The translations under genes and the position numbers were made by a program. Under the pieces are notes generated by a model. The model saw only the letters and a list, made by a program, of their open reading frames with translations. It was not told the origin of the DNA and did no database searches. A DNA stretch of 64,000 nt from IMG/VR virus record IMGVR_UViG_3300010399_000031, positions 179,404 to 243,403 of that record, one strand, 5' to 3'. Of the stretch, positions 7,140-49,661 are shown piece after piece. Within the stretch, counting starts at the first letter, position 1, and every line of letters starts with the position of its first letter.

Positions 7140-7169
7140 GGGGTTCCAAAAGGAACCCCTTTTATGCCC
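7140..7169 (+). terminator. hairpin + TTTTATGCCC
   Basis: GGGGTTCC-AAAA-GGAACCCC. Confidence 0.75.
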
Positions 7170-12829: not shown

Positions 12830-13369
12830 ATGCTCACAATCGTCGAGCATCATTCTAGCAGTTATGGTCCAAGGACGTTTCATAACGCAAAAGCTGCTGA
12901 TTTGACAGTGGCCATTGCGGTGGATTACTCCACATTTGGTGAAAAGCTCACCATGAAAGCGGCAGGCTCGCACTTTATCGCTTGTCCGTTTAAGACGGAT
13001 GCTTTAACCAATGCCAGAGAGCTTTATAAGTCGCTGTACCGCTGGCGTGCCTCAGTACTCAATGTGGCCGGTAACGGGATGTCTACGTTTGTCAAACATG
13101 ACGTAACGCAAGAACAAGTGAATCAGTACATCTTTGATATCCTCTCGACTGTGCACAAACATTACCCTCTAGCTGGGATTGTATCTGGGGGTCAAACGGG
13201 TGCCGATATTGCAGGTGCAGCCGTGGGGTACAAGTTGGGCATTGCTACGACTGTGACATTGCCCCATGGGTTTAAACAGCGCGATACAACAGGTGTCGAT
13301 AGCAACCACACTCAAAAAGAGATTCGCCAGCAGATCCTTGATTTCGCAGAGAAAATTTACGCTGCGTGA
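12830..13369 (+). CDS. YpsA/SLOG-family (putative molybdenum-carrier-like) nucleotide-binding protein
   Basis: 'YGPRTFHNAKAADLT', 'VLNVAGN', 'IVSGGQTGADIAG'. Confidence 0.75.
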   Translation: MLTIVEHHSSSYGPRTFHNAKAADLTVAIAVDYSTFGEKLTMKAAGSHFIACPFKTDALTNARELYKSLYRWRASVLNVAGNGMSTFVKHDVTQEQVNQYIFDILSTVHKHYPLAGIVSGGQTGADIAGAAVGYKLGIATTVTLPHGFKQRDTTGVDSNHTQKEIRQQILDFAEKIYAA

Positions 13370-13395
13370 AATAATGTGCGAGAAACCATTGATGC

Positions 13396-13506
13396 GCAGT
13401 GTAGAGCCAGTGTACCCAGCTGAGGGAGAGGGGTTAAGCAGCTGGGGCGACTTGACACATGCTGATGCCCTCCATCATCATCGATGTTTCTGGGTAATAC
13501 CACTGC
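13396..13506 (+). ncRNA. structured RNA, unknown
   Basis: GCAGTG/CACTGC closing stem; CCCAGCTG/CAGCTGGG; TGATG/CATCA. Confidence 0.45.
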
Positions 13507-13527
13507 ACGGCTGCGGTGCAGGCGCAT

Positions 13528-13606
13528 GGGCGAGGGGTATCCACTCCCGGACGGAGAGTCTAGACAGTATAGGCTTTGTTGGGTTCGAATCCCAACCTTG
13601 GCCTCA
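13528..13606 (+). ncRNA. tRNA-like RNA with canonical T-arm
   Basis: GTTGGG-TTCGAAT-CCCAAC T-arm; acceptor-like GGGCGAGG/CCTTGGCC; non-canonical D and anticodon arms. Confidence 0.6.
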
Positions 13607-13625
13607 GCGACAGCAGAAGGATTGT

Positions 13626-13755
13626 GAGGAAGGCTAGGGAATCGATGATCCCAGCAGCGAATACCCCGTTTGCTGCCGAGTCGTAGTAACTGATCCTCGT
13701 GATGGGACGAGGTGTTGGTTGGCTCATTGCAGGTTCAATTCCTGCCCTTAACCTC
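13626..13755 (+). ncRNA. extended tRNA-like RNA with T-arm
   Basis: GCAGG-TTCAATT-CCTGC T-arm; GAGG-AAGG/CCTT-AA-CCTC closing stem; three internal hairpins. Confidence 0.55.
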
Positions 13756-13869
13756 GTTTTCTTTAGACCACTTAAGTGGCACATTGTTGGGTCTCGCCTT
13801 CACTGTTTCACTCCTGGGCGACTGCCATGACTTGACGATGCGCCAACCTAAGTAGTTTCTTGTAGTAGA

Positions 13870-13954
13870 CCCGAGGTAGCTCAGTCTGGTAGAGCGGCGT
13901 CTGTCCGGCCGGTAAAGACGCAGGTCGGTGGTTCAAATCCATCCCGAGGGGCCA
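13870..13954 (+). tRNA. aberrant tRNA (15-nt anticodon loop, encoded CCA; isotype undetermined)
   Basis: D-arm GCTC-AGTCTGGTA-GAGC; anticodon stem GCGTC/GACGC; T-arm GGTGG-TTCAAAT-CCATC; acceptor CCCGAGG/CCGAGGG; G73-CCA. Confidence 0.8.
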
Positions 13955-14013
13955 ATTTCGATAGTATCTGTAACACCCACGGCAGAGATGCCACTTACTA
14001 GGACTAGACCATC

Positions 14014-14304
14014 ATGTTGTATTTGAAAGTAATGTCGAATGAAGATTTACCGGATACCGATCCGCTTAAGGATTTCAGCATCATTCCGATCAATAACACT
14101 GATCGATTGGTGTTTGTGAAGGACCAGTCTTATCCTGAAACGGATGTGCACTGGTGTGCGCTGATTGGTCCTCACGCAGGGTCGAACCAGGATGGATTTG
14201 ACATTCCCAGTCACGACAAAGACCGAGTGGTCCCCTTAACTGGCAACGCCTATGTTTTGAACGAGCAAGGCAAAACCATCGCCAGTCACGGTGTCGTGAA
14301 ATAA
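14014..14304 (+). CDS. hypothetical protein
   Basis: 'MLYLKVMSNE...LTGNAYVLNEQGKTI'; SD AGGA. Confidence 0.75.
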   Translation: MLYLKVMSNEDLPDTDPLKDFSIIPINNTDRLVFVKDQSYPETDVHWCALIGPHAGSNQDGFDIPSHDKDRVVPLTGNAYVLNEQGKTIASHGVVK

Positions 14305-14950
14305 AGCTGTCTGATGAGCCGTGCAAGTCGGCAGATGAGAATCCAATACACGCGATACCTCGCCGCGTGTGGATTTCGTCGGGTGCAAAGCCCACGAAAT
14401 AACGAAGATCACATCGTGTGTCTTGGAAGGACCTCACGGTGGTAGGCCAGATTGCTTAGGACGTCGATGAGCCACTTTGACCGGTGGTGTCCCGAGAGCA
14501 TCTACCTTTTAGATCTTCGTGATTACAGCGGGCGCGCGATGCGTCAAGTTGTGACCTTCTAACCGAATGGAGGAAGGACGCAGCCTGTAAGAACCTATCT
14601 GGGTGAAAGCAGACACCCGTGGACTGACCTCCACGTGAGGTAACGACTGGTCAGAATCGTTATCGAAGATTTAGGTATCTTACGGGGTGCGGAAGTTATG
14701 AATCCGAACCGATGCCTCGCCGGCATTCGCCGAGGAGGGAGTCGCTTGATTCCCTCCTCACACTAGCCTTCATCTTCCCGCAGCTTCGAGTCACACCACC
14801 ATTCGTGTTCGGCAAATCCGAGCGAGTTGGGGCAATGTGCCTAGGCTGCGGGAAGATGTGGGTTGGTCGACCTTGCATCGATGCGCTTTGAGTTGATGGG
14901 TCATGGGAAGAGGGGCGGGGGAGGGCTAAAGCTCTCCCCCAATCCTTATT
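14305..14950 (+). ncRNA. large structured ncRNA (about 640 nt), class unknown
   Basis: many nested helices, a 14-bp perfect stem (14771-14784/14845-14858) and a candidate kissing loop CTGACC/GGTCAG; ends in hairpin 14917-14940. Confidence 0.7.
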
Positions 14951-14980
14951 TATGCCGGAAAAAAAGGATGAGATAAGAAA

Positions 14981-15436
14981 ATGAAATACTGGATTGATGC
15001 AGAATTCAACTCATACGGGGGTCAGTTGATTTCCCTTGGAATGGTGCGTGAAGACAATGAAAGTCTTTACCTGGTGTATAACCGACCGATGCACATTCAT
15101 CCCTGGGTGAAAGAGCATGTGATGCCGTATTTGGATTCAGTGCCAGATCATATTTCGATTCATCGGATCTTTCCCTCCAATTCAGCTAAGTACATCGAGA
15201 AGTTTATGGCGAGTGATGACAATCCTATCGTTATCACCGATTGGCCTGATGATATCTCGTTTTTCAGTGAGCTTCTTCTGACGGGGCCGGGCACGATGAT
15301 CAACATTCCACGGATATCATTTCGCATGCATCGTATAGATGCTTACCCCACGAAAGTCGAAGGTGCGGTGCAGCACAACGCCTGGTGGGATGCCGTGGCT
15401 CTGAAAGCTAAGTGCGAGGAGCTTGGCTTGGAATAA
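14981..15436 (+). CDS. DEDDh 3'-5' exoribonuclease (Rv2179c/RNase AS-like)
   Basis: IDAEFN..GG.LISLG (ExoI), WPDD (ExoII), HNAWWDA (ExoIII). Confidence 0.8.
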   Translation: MKYWIDAEFNSYGGQLISLGMVREDNESLYLVYNRPMHIHPWVKEHVMPYLDSVPDHISIHRIFPSNSAKYIEKFMASDDNPIVITDWPDDISFFSELLLTGPGTMINIPRISFRMHRIDAYPTKVEGAVQHNAWWDAVALKAKCEELGLE

Positions 15437-15463
15437 AGTAAAAAATACACCACTTTCTATTAT

Positions 15464-16020
15464 ATGCGAGAGTGCTCCGCCACAGTGGACGTCCGCCTTA
15501 ACGCTTTCTCCTTTCTGGCGTTTTAGGTCGATGACTGCAATGTTGTATCGATTGGTCGAGCACAATTTTCGCAAGCCGGAGTCGTTGTCCGGACGCGCTA
15601 ACTTTCCGTGTAGGCGCGAGAGCCTGGTTTCCGACACTTACTGGGATAGCGCCCGGCGTCGGATAAACGGAGCGGGTGGAGCTACGCTAGGCTCCATCAA
15701 GTTGTACGCATGAGTGACAGGTCGACGGCCACCCAGGAGTTCTGGTAGCCTGATAGATCGACCACCTACGGGACGCGGAGGTGCTTCCTCCAGAACACCG
15801 GTTCGCGCATCCCGACTCGTTCACTCACTGAGCGCGCAGCCTGCAATGCTGTTAGGACTGAATTCGAATAGGTCTTGATAGCATTGTGGGATGCTCGTTC
15901 GAAACGCAGATCCGCTAGTCGATTCACCAAACGACTCCACGCGCTAGGGAATTGACAATCGAACTAGGGTTTTGCTTTCGCGCATCGGTGTGGTAGGGGT
16001 GGCTTCGGCCACCCCGCTAT
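15464..16020 (+). ncRNA. large structured ncRNA (about 560 nt), class unknown
   Basis: 20-bp G-U-rich hairpin 15840-15890; long-range GGAGTCGTT/AACGACTCC; multiple stems; ends at GGGGTGGC-TTCG-GCCACCCC. Confidence 0.7.
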
Positions 16021-16049
16021 GCCGTCGTTTAAATGACTTAGGGACCATC

Positions 16050-16526
16050 ATGGACTTTCTCTACCACGGCTCAGCCTTTAAACAAGACGAATTGAAACCT
16101 GGCTTTCACCACACCGGTAAGAAAGTCAATTGGGATCAAACGGAAGCGAACATCTGGCTTTACGCCACTACGCTCCGAGAAGAAGCTATTAGCCTAGGTT
16201 TTGCTTCAGCAGTGGAAAAGCAGTACGATGTGAAGCGCTACCACACGGAAGGCAAAGACATTCACTTCGATGTAAGAAAGGGCGAGACACTCAAACCACA
16301 TGAGCTGAACGAAATCAAAGTTTATCTGTACACGATACAGTATGATAAACGTGATGGCTGGGTGAAAGTGAACAACCAGTTTAACGGGATTGACCAAGAG
16401 TACAAGACCACCCATGTCATCAAAGAGAACCTCTTTAAACGAGAGGAAATCAATGTTGAGCAATGGTTGAAAGACAAGAACTTAACCATCGCTACTGAGA
16501 GTATGCCGATCTGGGCAAAGTGGTAA
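16050..16526 (+). CDS. hypothetical protein, probable head cargo
   Basis: MDFLYHGS start; C-terminal ATE site and PIWAKW tail. Confidence 0.75.
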   Translation: MDFLYHGSAFKQDELKPGFHHTGKKVNWDQTEANIWLYATTLREEAISLGFASAVEKQYDVKRYHTEGKDIHFDVRKGETLKPHELNEIKVYLYTIQYDKRDGWVKVNNQFNGIDQEYKTTHVIKENLFKREEINVEQWLKDKNLTIATESMPIWAKW

Positions 16527-16636
16527 TGTAGATTATCTTGGTTATATATAACAGGAATGATGAAGCAAGGACTTCTTTTAGGGGCTGTCCATTTGGACAG
16601 CCTTTATGCCCTTAATTGGTAAAAGGAAGAATCACC

Positions 16637-16948
16637 ATGATCACTGAGTTTACTAGCGCTGATGAATTGGCTTGCGACCATGACAAAGCGGTCGCTTACT
16701 TGACTCCCCGCCAGACGGATCTGGAGAAATTCATGAAATCCATGAAATGGGAAGTTCGGAACACCTTCTCAATCCAGGCCGATGTCTATGGCAATCAGAT
16801 CGTGCATGAACTGAAGCCCCGCCAGTTGCACAGCTTCCCAGTGTGGGGGGAACTGTTCTGGAAGCCCGGTGCTTCTAAAATAGAAGAGCCCGTCATATTC
16901 CACTCGTTCGAAAACTTCGCGGCTTTTGTGATGGCGAAATGGTGGTAA
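16637..16948 (+). CDS. hypothetical protein
   Basis: SD AAGGA. Confidence 0.7.
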   Translation: MITEFTSADELACDHDKAVAYLTPRQTDLEKFMKSMKWEVRNTFSIQADVYGNQIVHELKPRQLHSFPVWGELFWKPGASKIEEPVIFHSFENFAAFVMAKWW

Positions 16949-16961
16949 TCAGGAGATCGAA

Positions 16962-17084
16962 ATGATCAAGTTCATGATAATCGGTGCTCTGATTCTTTAC
17001 ATCGGCATCAAAATTGGTCAGCACTCGAAAGCCAGCTGGATTGGTGGTATTTTTGAAAAGAAGGATGATCCACGACGTTGGTAA
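16962..17084 (+). CDS. 40-aa membrane peptide (not in the ORF track)
   Basis: SD AGGAG; MIKFMIIGALILYIGIKIGQ... Confidence 0.6.
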   Translation: MIKFMIIGALILYIGIKIGQHSKASWIGGIFEKKDDPRRW

Positions 17085-17219
17085 GAATTTAGCTGTTCGA
17101 TCAATCAAGTAGGTCGTAGTACAGAGCGCTGTAGCGCGTGGAGCCAGTTGACACGTATTGGGCGACGACTGGGCAGCACGGGGAGACCAGCTCCCCTCTT
17201 ACTGATCATTGAGGTATTC

Positions 17220-17534
17220 ATGGATGAGTACGTAGTGGTATCAAAAGAGATGTCTTTCGAGAAACTGCTGACATACTTCAGAAGCTCGATTCCCATGACA
17301 GAGCGGATGGGTGGTGTCGTCCGTATTTCAAAACCGATCGTCGAGAAAATCATCGAGACGCAAGACATGGTGGAAATCAACAATGTAGTTCGTGAGTTAC
17401 TCGCGATCTATCAGAGTGTGAATCCAAAGTCGTTCGATTATGTTTCAGCGAGTCTACTACGTTCTATTTTAGGTGAGACTGTGCGAGACGCAATTGTCGG
17501 TCGATGTCGTGATCTTCTTGTCTTGGCTTCCTAA
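17220..17534 (+). CDS. hypothetical protein
   Basis: SD GAGGT before the ATG at 17220. Confidence 0.65.
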   Translation: MDEYVVVSKEMSFEKLLTYFRSSIPMTERMGGVVRISKPIVEKIIETQDMVEINNVVRELLAIYQSVNPKSFDYVSASLLRSILGETVRDAIVGRCRDLLVLAS

Positions 17535-49631: not shown

Positions 49632-49661
49632 GGGAGAGCCGTTTGGCTCTCCCTTTATGCC
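49632..49661 (+). terminator. hairpin + TTTATGCC
   Basis: GGGAGAGCC-GTTT-GGCTCTCCC. Confidence 0.75.

Follow-up and report, generated by a model that had tools for sequence, protein, structure and literature searches.

A new large structured non-coding RNA in nucleus-forming jumbo phages

We find that a 613-nt gap between two genes of a phiKZ-like, chimallin-encoding jumbo phage from soil encodes a discrete structured non-coding RNA of about 555 nt, whose function is unknown and which we did not find described in the literature we could search. The RNA lies at 15466-16023 on the + strand of the analysed window, a 64,000-nt stretch of DNA that forms the last 64 kb of a 243-kb IMG/VR virus record. 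It is conserved in 13 related phage lineages (506-572 nt in the relatives, 558 nt here), its sequence is present in soil and root RNA libraries, and it lies directly downstream of a DEDDh 3'-5' exoribonuclease gene in all 12 lineages where that side is visible. A preliminary description, made from the sequence alone, had proposed a structured RNA of roughly 560 nt that acts at the RNA level on the + strand, begins at a TATG (a possible late-promoter motif) and ends at a UUCG hairpin. Every element that it listed is in the sequence and its interpretation is supported, with the exception that a pairing it proposed over a range of 350 nt shows conserved complementarity without covariation and remains a hypothesis.

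The genes of the window include a phiKZ-type virion structural protein and an SNF2 helicase, and a close relative carries chimallin about 3 kb downstream of the region and a phiKZ-type major capsid protein nearby. The nearest cultured phages are the Pseudomonas phages Noxifer and pPa_SNUABM_DT01, with 47-49% amino-acid identity for the gene at 16050-16526, and we therefore consider the element to be a nucleus-forming jumbo phage from soil. The gap itself (15437-16049) separates two + strand genes. The locus and the parts of the RNA are as follows, in window coordinates.

14981-15436 (+): the linked upstream gene, a DEDDh 3'-5' exoribonuclease of the RNase AS / Rv2179c type.
15459-15467 (+): the conserved putative promoter block ATTATATGC, with TATG at 15463-15466 and a predicted transcription start at G15466.
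15466-16023 (+): the structured non-coding RNA.
15466-15572 (+): the 5' domain, closed by helix P1 (15466-15473 with 15565-15572).
15500-15522 (+): a hairpin presenting the conserved apical loop YCUCCUUUCU (loop 15506-15516), which resembles the anti-Shine-Dalgarno sequence.
15570-15712 (+): a highly conserved core of four hairpins, at 15576-15592, 15594-15618, 15630-15663 and 15667-15705.
15576-15592 (+): the first core hairpin, whose loop and upper stem (GGAGUCG, 15578-15584) are complementary to 15932-15938.
15711-15827 (+): a variable central domain, made of a closing stem plus two hairpins (a three-way junction).
15829-15901 (+): a long G-U-rich hairpin.
15918-15956 (+): a hairpin carrying the invariant GACUCCAC in its apical region.
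15969-15975 (+): an invariant GUUUUGC segment.
15987-16023 (+): the 3' terminal stem with a UUCG-capped GC hairpin (15996-16015), fused to TATGCC (16018-16023), the putative promoter of the next gene.
16050-16526 (+): the downstream gene (phrog_13483, function unknown).

To obtain homologs, we looked up relatives of the two flanking proteins and fetched their contigs, which yielded 12 further lineages (labeled here with L numbers, such as L002) whose flanking proteins are 54-85% identical to those of the window and which all carry a homologous gap of 506-572 nt. Other searches added little. A DNA similarity search of the INPHARED phage collection with the gap (614 nt) gave no match. Among about 45 IMG/VR and JGI contigs that carry the downstream-gene family at 36-49% identity, BLASTN and a model of the core found the RNA only in the closest lineage. 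A search of twenty-one chimallivirus records with the core model returned only the three known records, together with two hits in pPa_SNUABM_DT01 (19 and 15 bits), the stronger of which lies inside a baseplate gene on the opposite strand; we treat both as chance. A scan with a 17-mer gave one chance hit (L007), and a gapped pattern found nothing new in viral contigs and nothing in one genome per GTDB species. The RNA is absent from 18 other chimallivirus records (16 from IMG/VR, plus Noxifer and pPa_SNUABM_DT01), from the phage collection and, by this conserved pattern, from the GTDB genomes.

We next tested whether the structure exceeds chance. The minimum free energy of the single sequence gave z = -3.8 on the + strand and z = -2.2 on the - strand, and the homolog in lineage L002 gave z = -6.0. 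The decisive evidence is comparative. The consensus folding energy of the 13 aligned sequences (RNAalifold) was -103.7 kcal/mol on the + strand, against -34.9 +/- 5.7 for column shuffles (z = -12.1), while the - strand gave z = -1.2. The consensus contains 102 pairs, with 95.9% of cells paired and 37 covarying pairs, whereas sliding the 3' partners by 1-3 columns left 36-43% of cells paired and 12-17 covarying pairs. There are 264 G-U cells, which would be A-C on the other strand. In the core model (15570-15712), 97.8% of cells are paired and eight pairs are compensatory, a result reached by 0 of 500 shuffles, with 30-39% paired in the slid controls. Separate folds of the 5' domain (12 sequences) and the 3' domain (13 sequences) showed compensatory changes in 12 of 22 and 18 of 54 pairs, respectively. 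The covariation rests on 13 related sequences, as the family was found only in this clade.

The same alignments show a slowly evolving core with fast-evolving peripheral domains that keep their shape. P1 (GCGAGAGU) has four of eight covarying pairs, and the helices nested within it differ in sequence between clades while sharing one architecture in per-sequence folds. The stem at 15500-15522 covaries, with four pairs changed on both sides, while its 11-nt loop is conserved in 11 of 12 lineages as YCUCCUUUCU (UUCUCCUUUCU here; CACCUCCUUUCU in L002, L074 and L065). The core is 94%, 91%, 80% and 65% identical to L061, L002, L073 and L067, compared with 59-81% DNA identity for the flanking genes, and the core model scores 62-176 bits in all lineages. 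Within it, the UCCGAC/GUCGGA helix (15630-15637 with 15658-15663) has four covarying pairs, while the stem at 15576-15592 is invariant. The central domain, closed by UGAGUGA/UCACUCA (15711-15717 with 15821-15827), is not alignable between clades and carries indels of 10-38 nt, yet every lineage folds into the same closing stem plus two hairpins. The long hairpin is larger than the 20 base pairs first described: it joins 15829-15859 with 15871-15901 through 26 pairs, of which 12 covary, with 94% of cells paired and 72 G-U cells across lineages, and the window copy has 5-7 G-U pairs. The hairpin at 15918-15956 has eight stem pairs, 100% paired, and its GACUCCAC is invariant in 13 of 13 lineages. 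The 3' terminal stem, which contains GGGGUGGC-UUCG-GCCACCCC, has 12 pairs, five of them covarying.

Long-range contacts are less certain. The complementarity between GGAGUCGUU (15578-15586) and AACGACUCC (15930-15938), which joins the apical regions of two hairpins, has a 7-bp core (GGAGUCG 15578-15584 with CGACUCC 15932-15938) that is kept in 10-12 of 12 lineages. However, it is kept only through invariance and two G-U-compatible changes, with one mismatch and a break or register shift in L067, so the pairing is plausible but not proven. The GUUUUGC segment, invariant in 13 of 13 lineages, can pair with the 5' end GCGAGA or with GAAAC at 15902-15906, and neither option shows covariation; the long-range closing helices are ambiguous. 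A different helix suggested by a 7-sequence fold (15622-15628 with 15963-15970) did not hold in the 13-sequence alignment (72% paired, no covariation), and we regard it as an alignment artefact. Pairing of the CUCCUUUC loop with a GAAAGGAG segment of the neighboring upstream RNA was not supported by inspection, as the segment is not conserved in L061 or L064.

The region is not coding. Every reading frame has at least three stops in every lineage, substitutions are spread evenly over the three codon phases, and indels are mostly 1-2 nt, with only 1-4 of 10-24 per pairwise comparison (and none of five for L061) being multiples of three. We also compared the RNA to known families. A covariance-model scan of the whole window with all 4227 Rfam 15 families found nothing on this RNA at gathering score, including ROOL, GOLLD, OLE and the intron and ribozyme models, and at E up to 10 on 13300-16300 it found only chance microRNA and CRISPR-repeat hits of 15-21 bits. 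ARAGORN found no tRNA or tmRNA in the window. A survey of IMG/VR structured RNAs reports motifs averaging 67 nt and does not mention this RNA (PMC10690425).

Similarity between lineages begins abruptly at ATTATATGC, which is present in all 12 lineages that include the 5' end, and ends at TATGCC. Late promoters of phiKZ, used by the non-virion RNA polymerase, have the consensus TATG with the final G as +1 (PMC4666361); here, that G would be 15466, exactly the first base of P1, although TATG alone is known to be insufficient. The motif TATGCC recurs 11-178 nt before seven gene starts in the window, four of them at 30-32 nt, and a module consisting of a GC-rich hairpin followed at once by (TT)TATGCC occurs at eight sites, one of which is the 3' end of the RNA. 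We read this module as a terminator fused to the next gene's start, though the 3' hairpin lacks a good U-tract in most lineages. In L032, L065 and L066, small ORFs are inserted right after the module, and in L071 and L072 an unrelated 131-aa gene replaces the downstream gene. The RNA is therefore a self-contained unit.

We then turned to RNA libraries. One rhizosphere metatranscriptome (X5) holds 55% of the RNA's sampled words and, across 13000-17500, gives a single 364-nt contig at 15484-15847 (99%+ identical, one difference) and nothing on the flanking genes. Three root metatranscriptomes (X14-X16) hold contigs of a relative, identified by their loose ends as the L061 lineage, that lie on this RNA and on the neighboring non-coding block. 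In X15, word depth is 20.8 over the core, against 4.6 over the junction with the next gene. Three of these contigs begin at positions equivalent to 15480-15485, within about 20 nt of the predicted start. Because the assembled contigs (Logan) carry no strand and their ends are set by the assembler, these data show presence and relative abundance only. Two contigs run from the RNA's 3' part about 95 nt into the downstream gene, so some read-through occurs.

The upstream gene is labeled 'Rnase H' by PHROGs (phrog_2259, E = 7e-31), but it is not an RNase H. The residues D6, E8, D87 (with D90 and D91), H132 and D137 are invariant in 20 homologs, and a profile search of the PDB hits 6s0m, 4oke and 4hec at E = 1e-7 to 3e-7, matching the solved 3'-5' exoribonuclease Rv2179c (RNase AS) at E = 1e-7; the NCBIfam RNase_AS model matches only weakly (E = 0.0017, below its cut-off). 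Further upstream lie a second conserved structured RNA at 14305-14980 (alifold z = -18), a small ORF and the phage's tRNA locus, which holds tRNA-Ser and tRNA-Asn in L002 and a tRNA-like element at 13870-13951 in the window, 1.2-1.6 kb upstream of the RNA. The locus is a stable-RNA island.

We are highly confident that this is a real, expressed, structured non-coding RNA of a new family. Its mechanism is inferred, without direct evidence for function, and we hold it only tentatively; taken as a blend of the two, the overall account is somewhat more likely than not. In this account, the phage's non-virion RNA polymerase transcribes the RNA late from the conserved TATG, transcription ends at the UUCG-capped GC hairpin, and the neighboring exoribonuclease trims the 3' end up to that hairpin, as RNase T-type enzymes do for stable RNAs. 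The RNA then acts in trans as a compact particle, and not as a leader. Its working surfaces would be the conserved unpaired elements, namely the anti-Shine-Dalgarno-like apical loop and the complementary pair GGAGUCG / CGACUCC, which could form a kissing contact within one molecule or between molecules.

In kind, the RNA most resembles the large ornate phage RNAs ROOL and GOLLD, as it exceeds 500 nt in length, has a multi-domain fold supported by covariation, is phage-borne, lies near tRNA genes and appears highly expressed. ROOL (RF03087) averages 581 nt, is ornate and multi-domain, is encoded in phages and prophages, often near tRNA islands, is very abundant, has no known protein partner and has conserved kissing loops that matter for its assembly (PMC5737381, PMC12286853). 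It shares no sequence or structure match with the present RNA and comes from rumen, Firmicutes and others, whereas this RNA is found in chimallin-encoding jumbo phages of soil and has a strictly linked exoribonuclease gene. GOLLD (RF01998) is a large phage-borne RNA next to tRNAs that rises late in infection and has one conserved and one variable region, comparable to the conserved core and variable domains here, but it is 800 nt or longer and has an unrelated fold; its cage formation has been shown, which is not the case for this RNA. Non-coding transcripts of the nucleus-forming phage phiKZ were found by Grad-seq (PMC8545117), including one of about 100 nt between PHIKZ297 and PHIKZ298. The present RNA was found neither by the DNA similarity search, which covers phiKZ, nor by the core model, which covers PA7, Noxifer and 16 other chimallivirus records.

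Among alternative explanations, the best surviving one, though unlikely, is that the RNA and the exoribonuclease are a dedicated pair, in which the RNA is made as the 3' part of the exoribonuclease mRNA or from its own start, and then binds, inhibits, guides or is matured by that enzyme, instead of being an autonomous particle. Their adjacency is strict in 12 of 12 lineages even when the downstream gene changes, no terminator separates the gene from the RNA, and the enzyme family acts on RNA 3' ends. However, the family is widespread in phages that lack this RNA, for example Caulobacter, Brevundimonas and Ralstonia phages, and the conserved TATG and the RNA-only contig in X5 argue for an independent and far more abundant transcript.

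Less likely still is a cis-acting leader or attenuator that senses a signal and decides whether transcription passes the 3' hairpin. The RNA lies upstream of, and on the same strand as, the next gene, the hairpin has a weak U-tract, and contigs bridge the junction. In contrast, the downstream gene differs or is separated by inserted ORFs in five records (L071, L072, L032, L065 and L066), it has its own TATGCC start like other genes, the same gene in phiKZ, PhiPA3 and Noxifer has no such leader, the RNA is far larger than known leaders, and RNA depth over the core exceeds that over the junction. A similarly doubtful, more speculative possibility is that the RNA is a translation-directed decoy. 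Its apical loop (CAYCUCCUUUCUGG, with a second CACCUCC in one clade) equals the CCUCC core of anti-Shine-Dalgarno elements, as found in riboswitches and sRNAs, and probably the 3' tail of many 16S rRNAs, although here it sits in a 555-nt trans RNA and not next to a ribosome-binding site, and no target was identified. This abundant late RNA, possibly as an RNA-only multimer held by the kissing pair, would capture Shine-Dalgarno regions of mRNAs or a factor that binds the 16S 3' end, and thereby re-program translation in the infected cell.

A divergent self-splicing intron, another ribozyme or a relic of one is very unlikely: the RNA is large with a complex fold, and homing-endonuclease genes (GIY-YIG/NUMOD3) lie nearby in L065 and L074, but no Rfam intron or ribozyme model matches even at E up to 10, it interrupts no gene, it occupies the same place in all lineages and there are no flanking exon halves. 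Although the region is a long gap in a densely coded genome, overlapped by mechanical ORFs of 54-106 aa, a DNA-level element (origin, packaging site) or a set of small protein genes is disfavored by the strand-specific fold, the presence in RNA libraries and the lack of any conserved ORF or codon periodicity.

Only a handful of classes of large (over 500 nt), elaborately folded non-coding RNA are known in bacteria and phages, namely rRNAs, group II introns, GOLLD, ROOL and OLE, and two of them were recently shown to form RNA-only cages of unknown purpose. The RNA described here is a new, unrelated class with the same ecological signature, being phage-borne, next to tRNA genes and abundant, and it occurs in nucleus-forming jumbo phages, where RNA must cross a protein shell to reach ribosomes. 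It offers a fresh system for asking what such RNAs do, with a defined candidate protein partner in the exoribonuclease and concrete conserved loops, and it is evidence that jumbo-phage genomes hold sizeable RNA genes that protein-centered annotation misses.

We next examined the sequence surrounding the structured RNA, where additional elements were observed on the same strand. In the window, the elements on the upstream side are as follows.

12830-13369 (+), a gene encoding a cpYpsA (circularly permuted SLOG) domain protein.
13487-13635 (+), a 149-nt conserved stretch.
13870-13951 (+), a tRNA-like element.
14305-14980 (+), a second large non-coding block.
14306-14333 (+), the first 28 nt of that upstream RNA.
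14981-15436 (+), a gene encoding a DEDDh 3'-5' exoribonuclease.

The second large non-coding block, at 14305-14980, is presumably the 'first' RNA implied by the preliminary description, which had numbered the RNA studied here as the second. It is 81% identical to L002, a related phage lineage, over 680 nt, and RNAalifold on 5 lineages gives z = -18.3 on the + strand and -13.4 on the - strand. The block is covered by a relative's contig in the root metatranscriptome X15, with a 234-nt variable part replaced by 424 other nucleotides, and it ends in a GC hairpin followed by TTTATGCC, like the RNA studied here. The first 28 nt of this upstream RNA (GCUGUCUGAUGAGCCGUGCAAGUCGGC; also found in the phage records L012, at 2101-2128, L064, at 68-93, and L067, at 2229-2256) are 93-96% conserved, even in a phage whose flanking protein is only 44% identical. 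The CUGAUGA followed by a short hairpin recalls a hammerhead core or a C/D-box K-turn. However, no GAAA follows the hairpin, and no Rfam ribozyme model matches.

The tRNA-like element at 13870-13951 scores 39.9 bits with the Rfam tRNA model, but it has a 15-nt anticodon loop and is not called by ARAGORN. It is the only tRNA hit in the whole 243-kb record. In contrast, the L002 lineage has ordinary tRNA-Ser(GCU) and tRNA-Asn(GUU) genes at the corresponding place. The 149-nt stretch at 13487-13635 is 93% identical to L002, well above the 58-68% amino-acid identity of the two flanking proteins. It contains a T-arm-like GGUUCGAAUCCCAAC and overlaps the mechanical ORF 13266-13637, and it may be a third conserved RNA and not a protein-coding region. 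The cpYpsA domain protein borders the RNA island in every lineage seen (the window and the related phages L061, L067, L070 and L074).

The gene at 14981-15436 that PHROGs labels 'Rnase H' (phrog_2259) is a DEDDh 3'-5' exoribonuclease of the RNase AS / Rv2179c type, a family that is common in Caulobacter, Brevundimonas, Ralstonia and Burkholderia jumbo phages. In two lineages, homing-endonuclease-like genes (GIY-YIG / NUMOD3) are inserted just upstream of the exoribonuclease gene (L065:184-870 and L074:2387-3004), and this part of the genome appears to be a hot spot for insertions. On the other side of the RNA, one or two small ORFs (80-83 aa) are inserted between its 3' hairpin and the phrog_13483 gene in some lineages (L032:~520-830, L065:2017-2268 and L066:485-982), which was useful for fixing the RNA's 3' boundary. 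In the closest relative, L061, a protein with an RNA polymerase alpha C-terminal-domain hit (PF03118) lies just downstream of the phrog_13483 gene, and chimallin lies about 3 kb further on (L061:4594-5184 and L061:7343-8477).

Finally, we found a recurring module in which a GC-rich hairpin is followed at once by (TT)TATGCC, with eight copies on the + strand of the window, at 7163, 9148, 14951, 16018, 16605, 20149, 34498 and 49656. Seven of the eight copies lie 11-178 nt upstream of a gene start (four at 30-32 nt), while no + strand gene start was identified after the copy at 49656. The module looks like a fused terminator and late-type promoter, and could be used to define this phage's transcription units.
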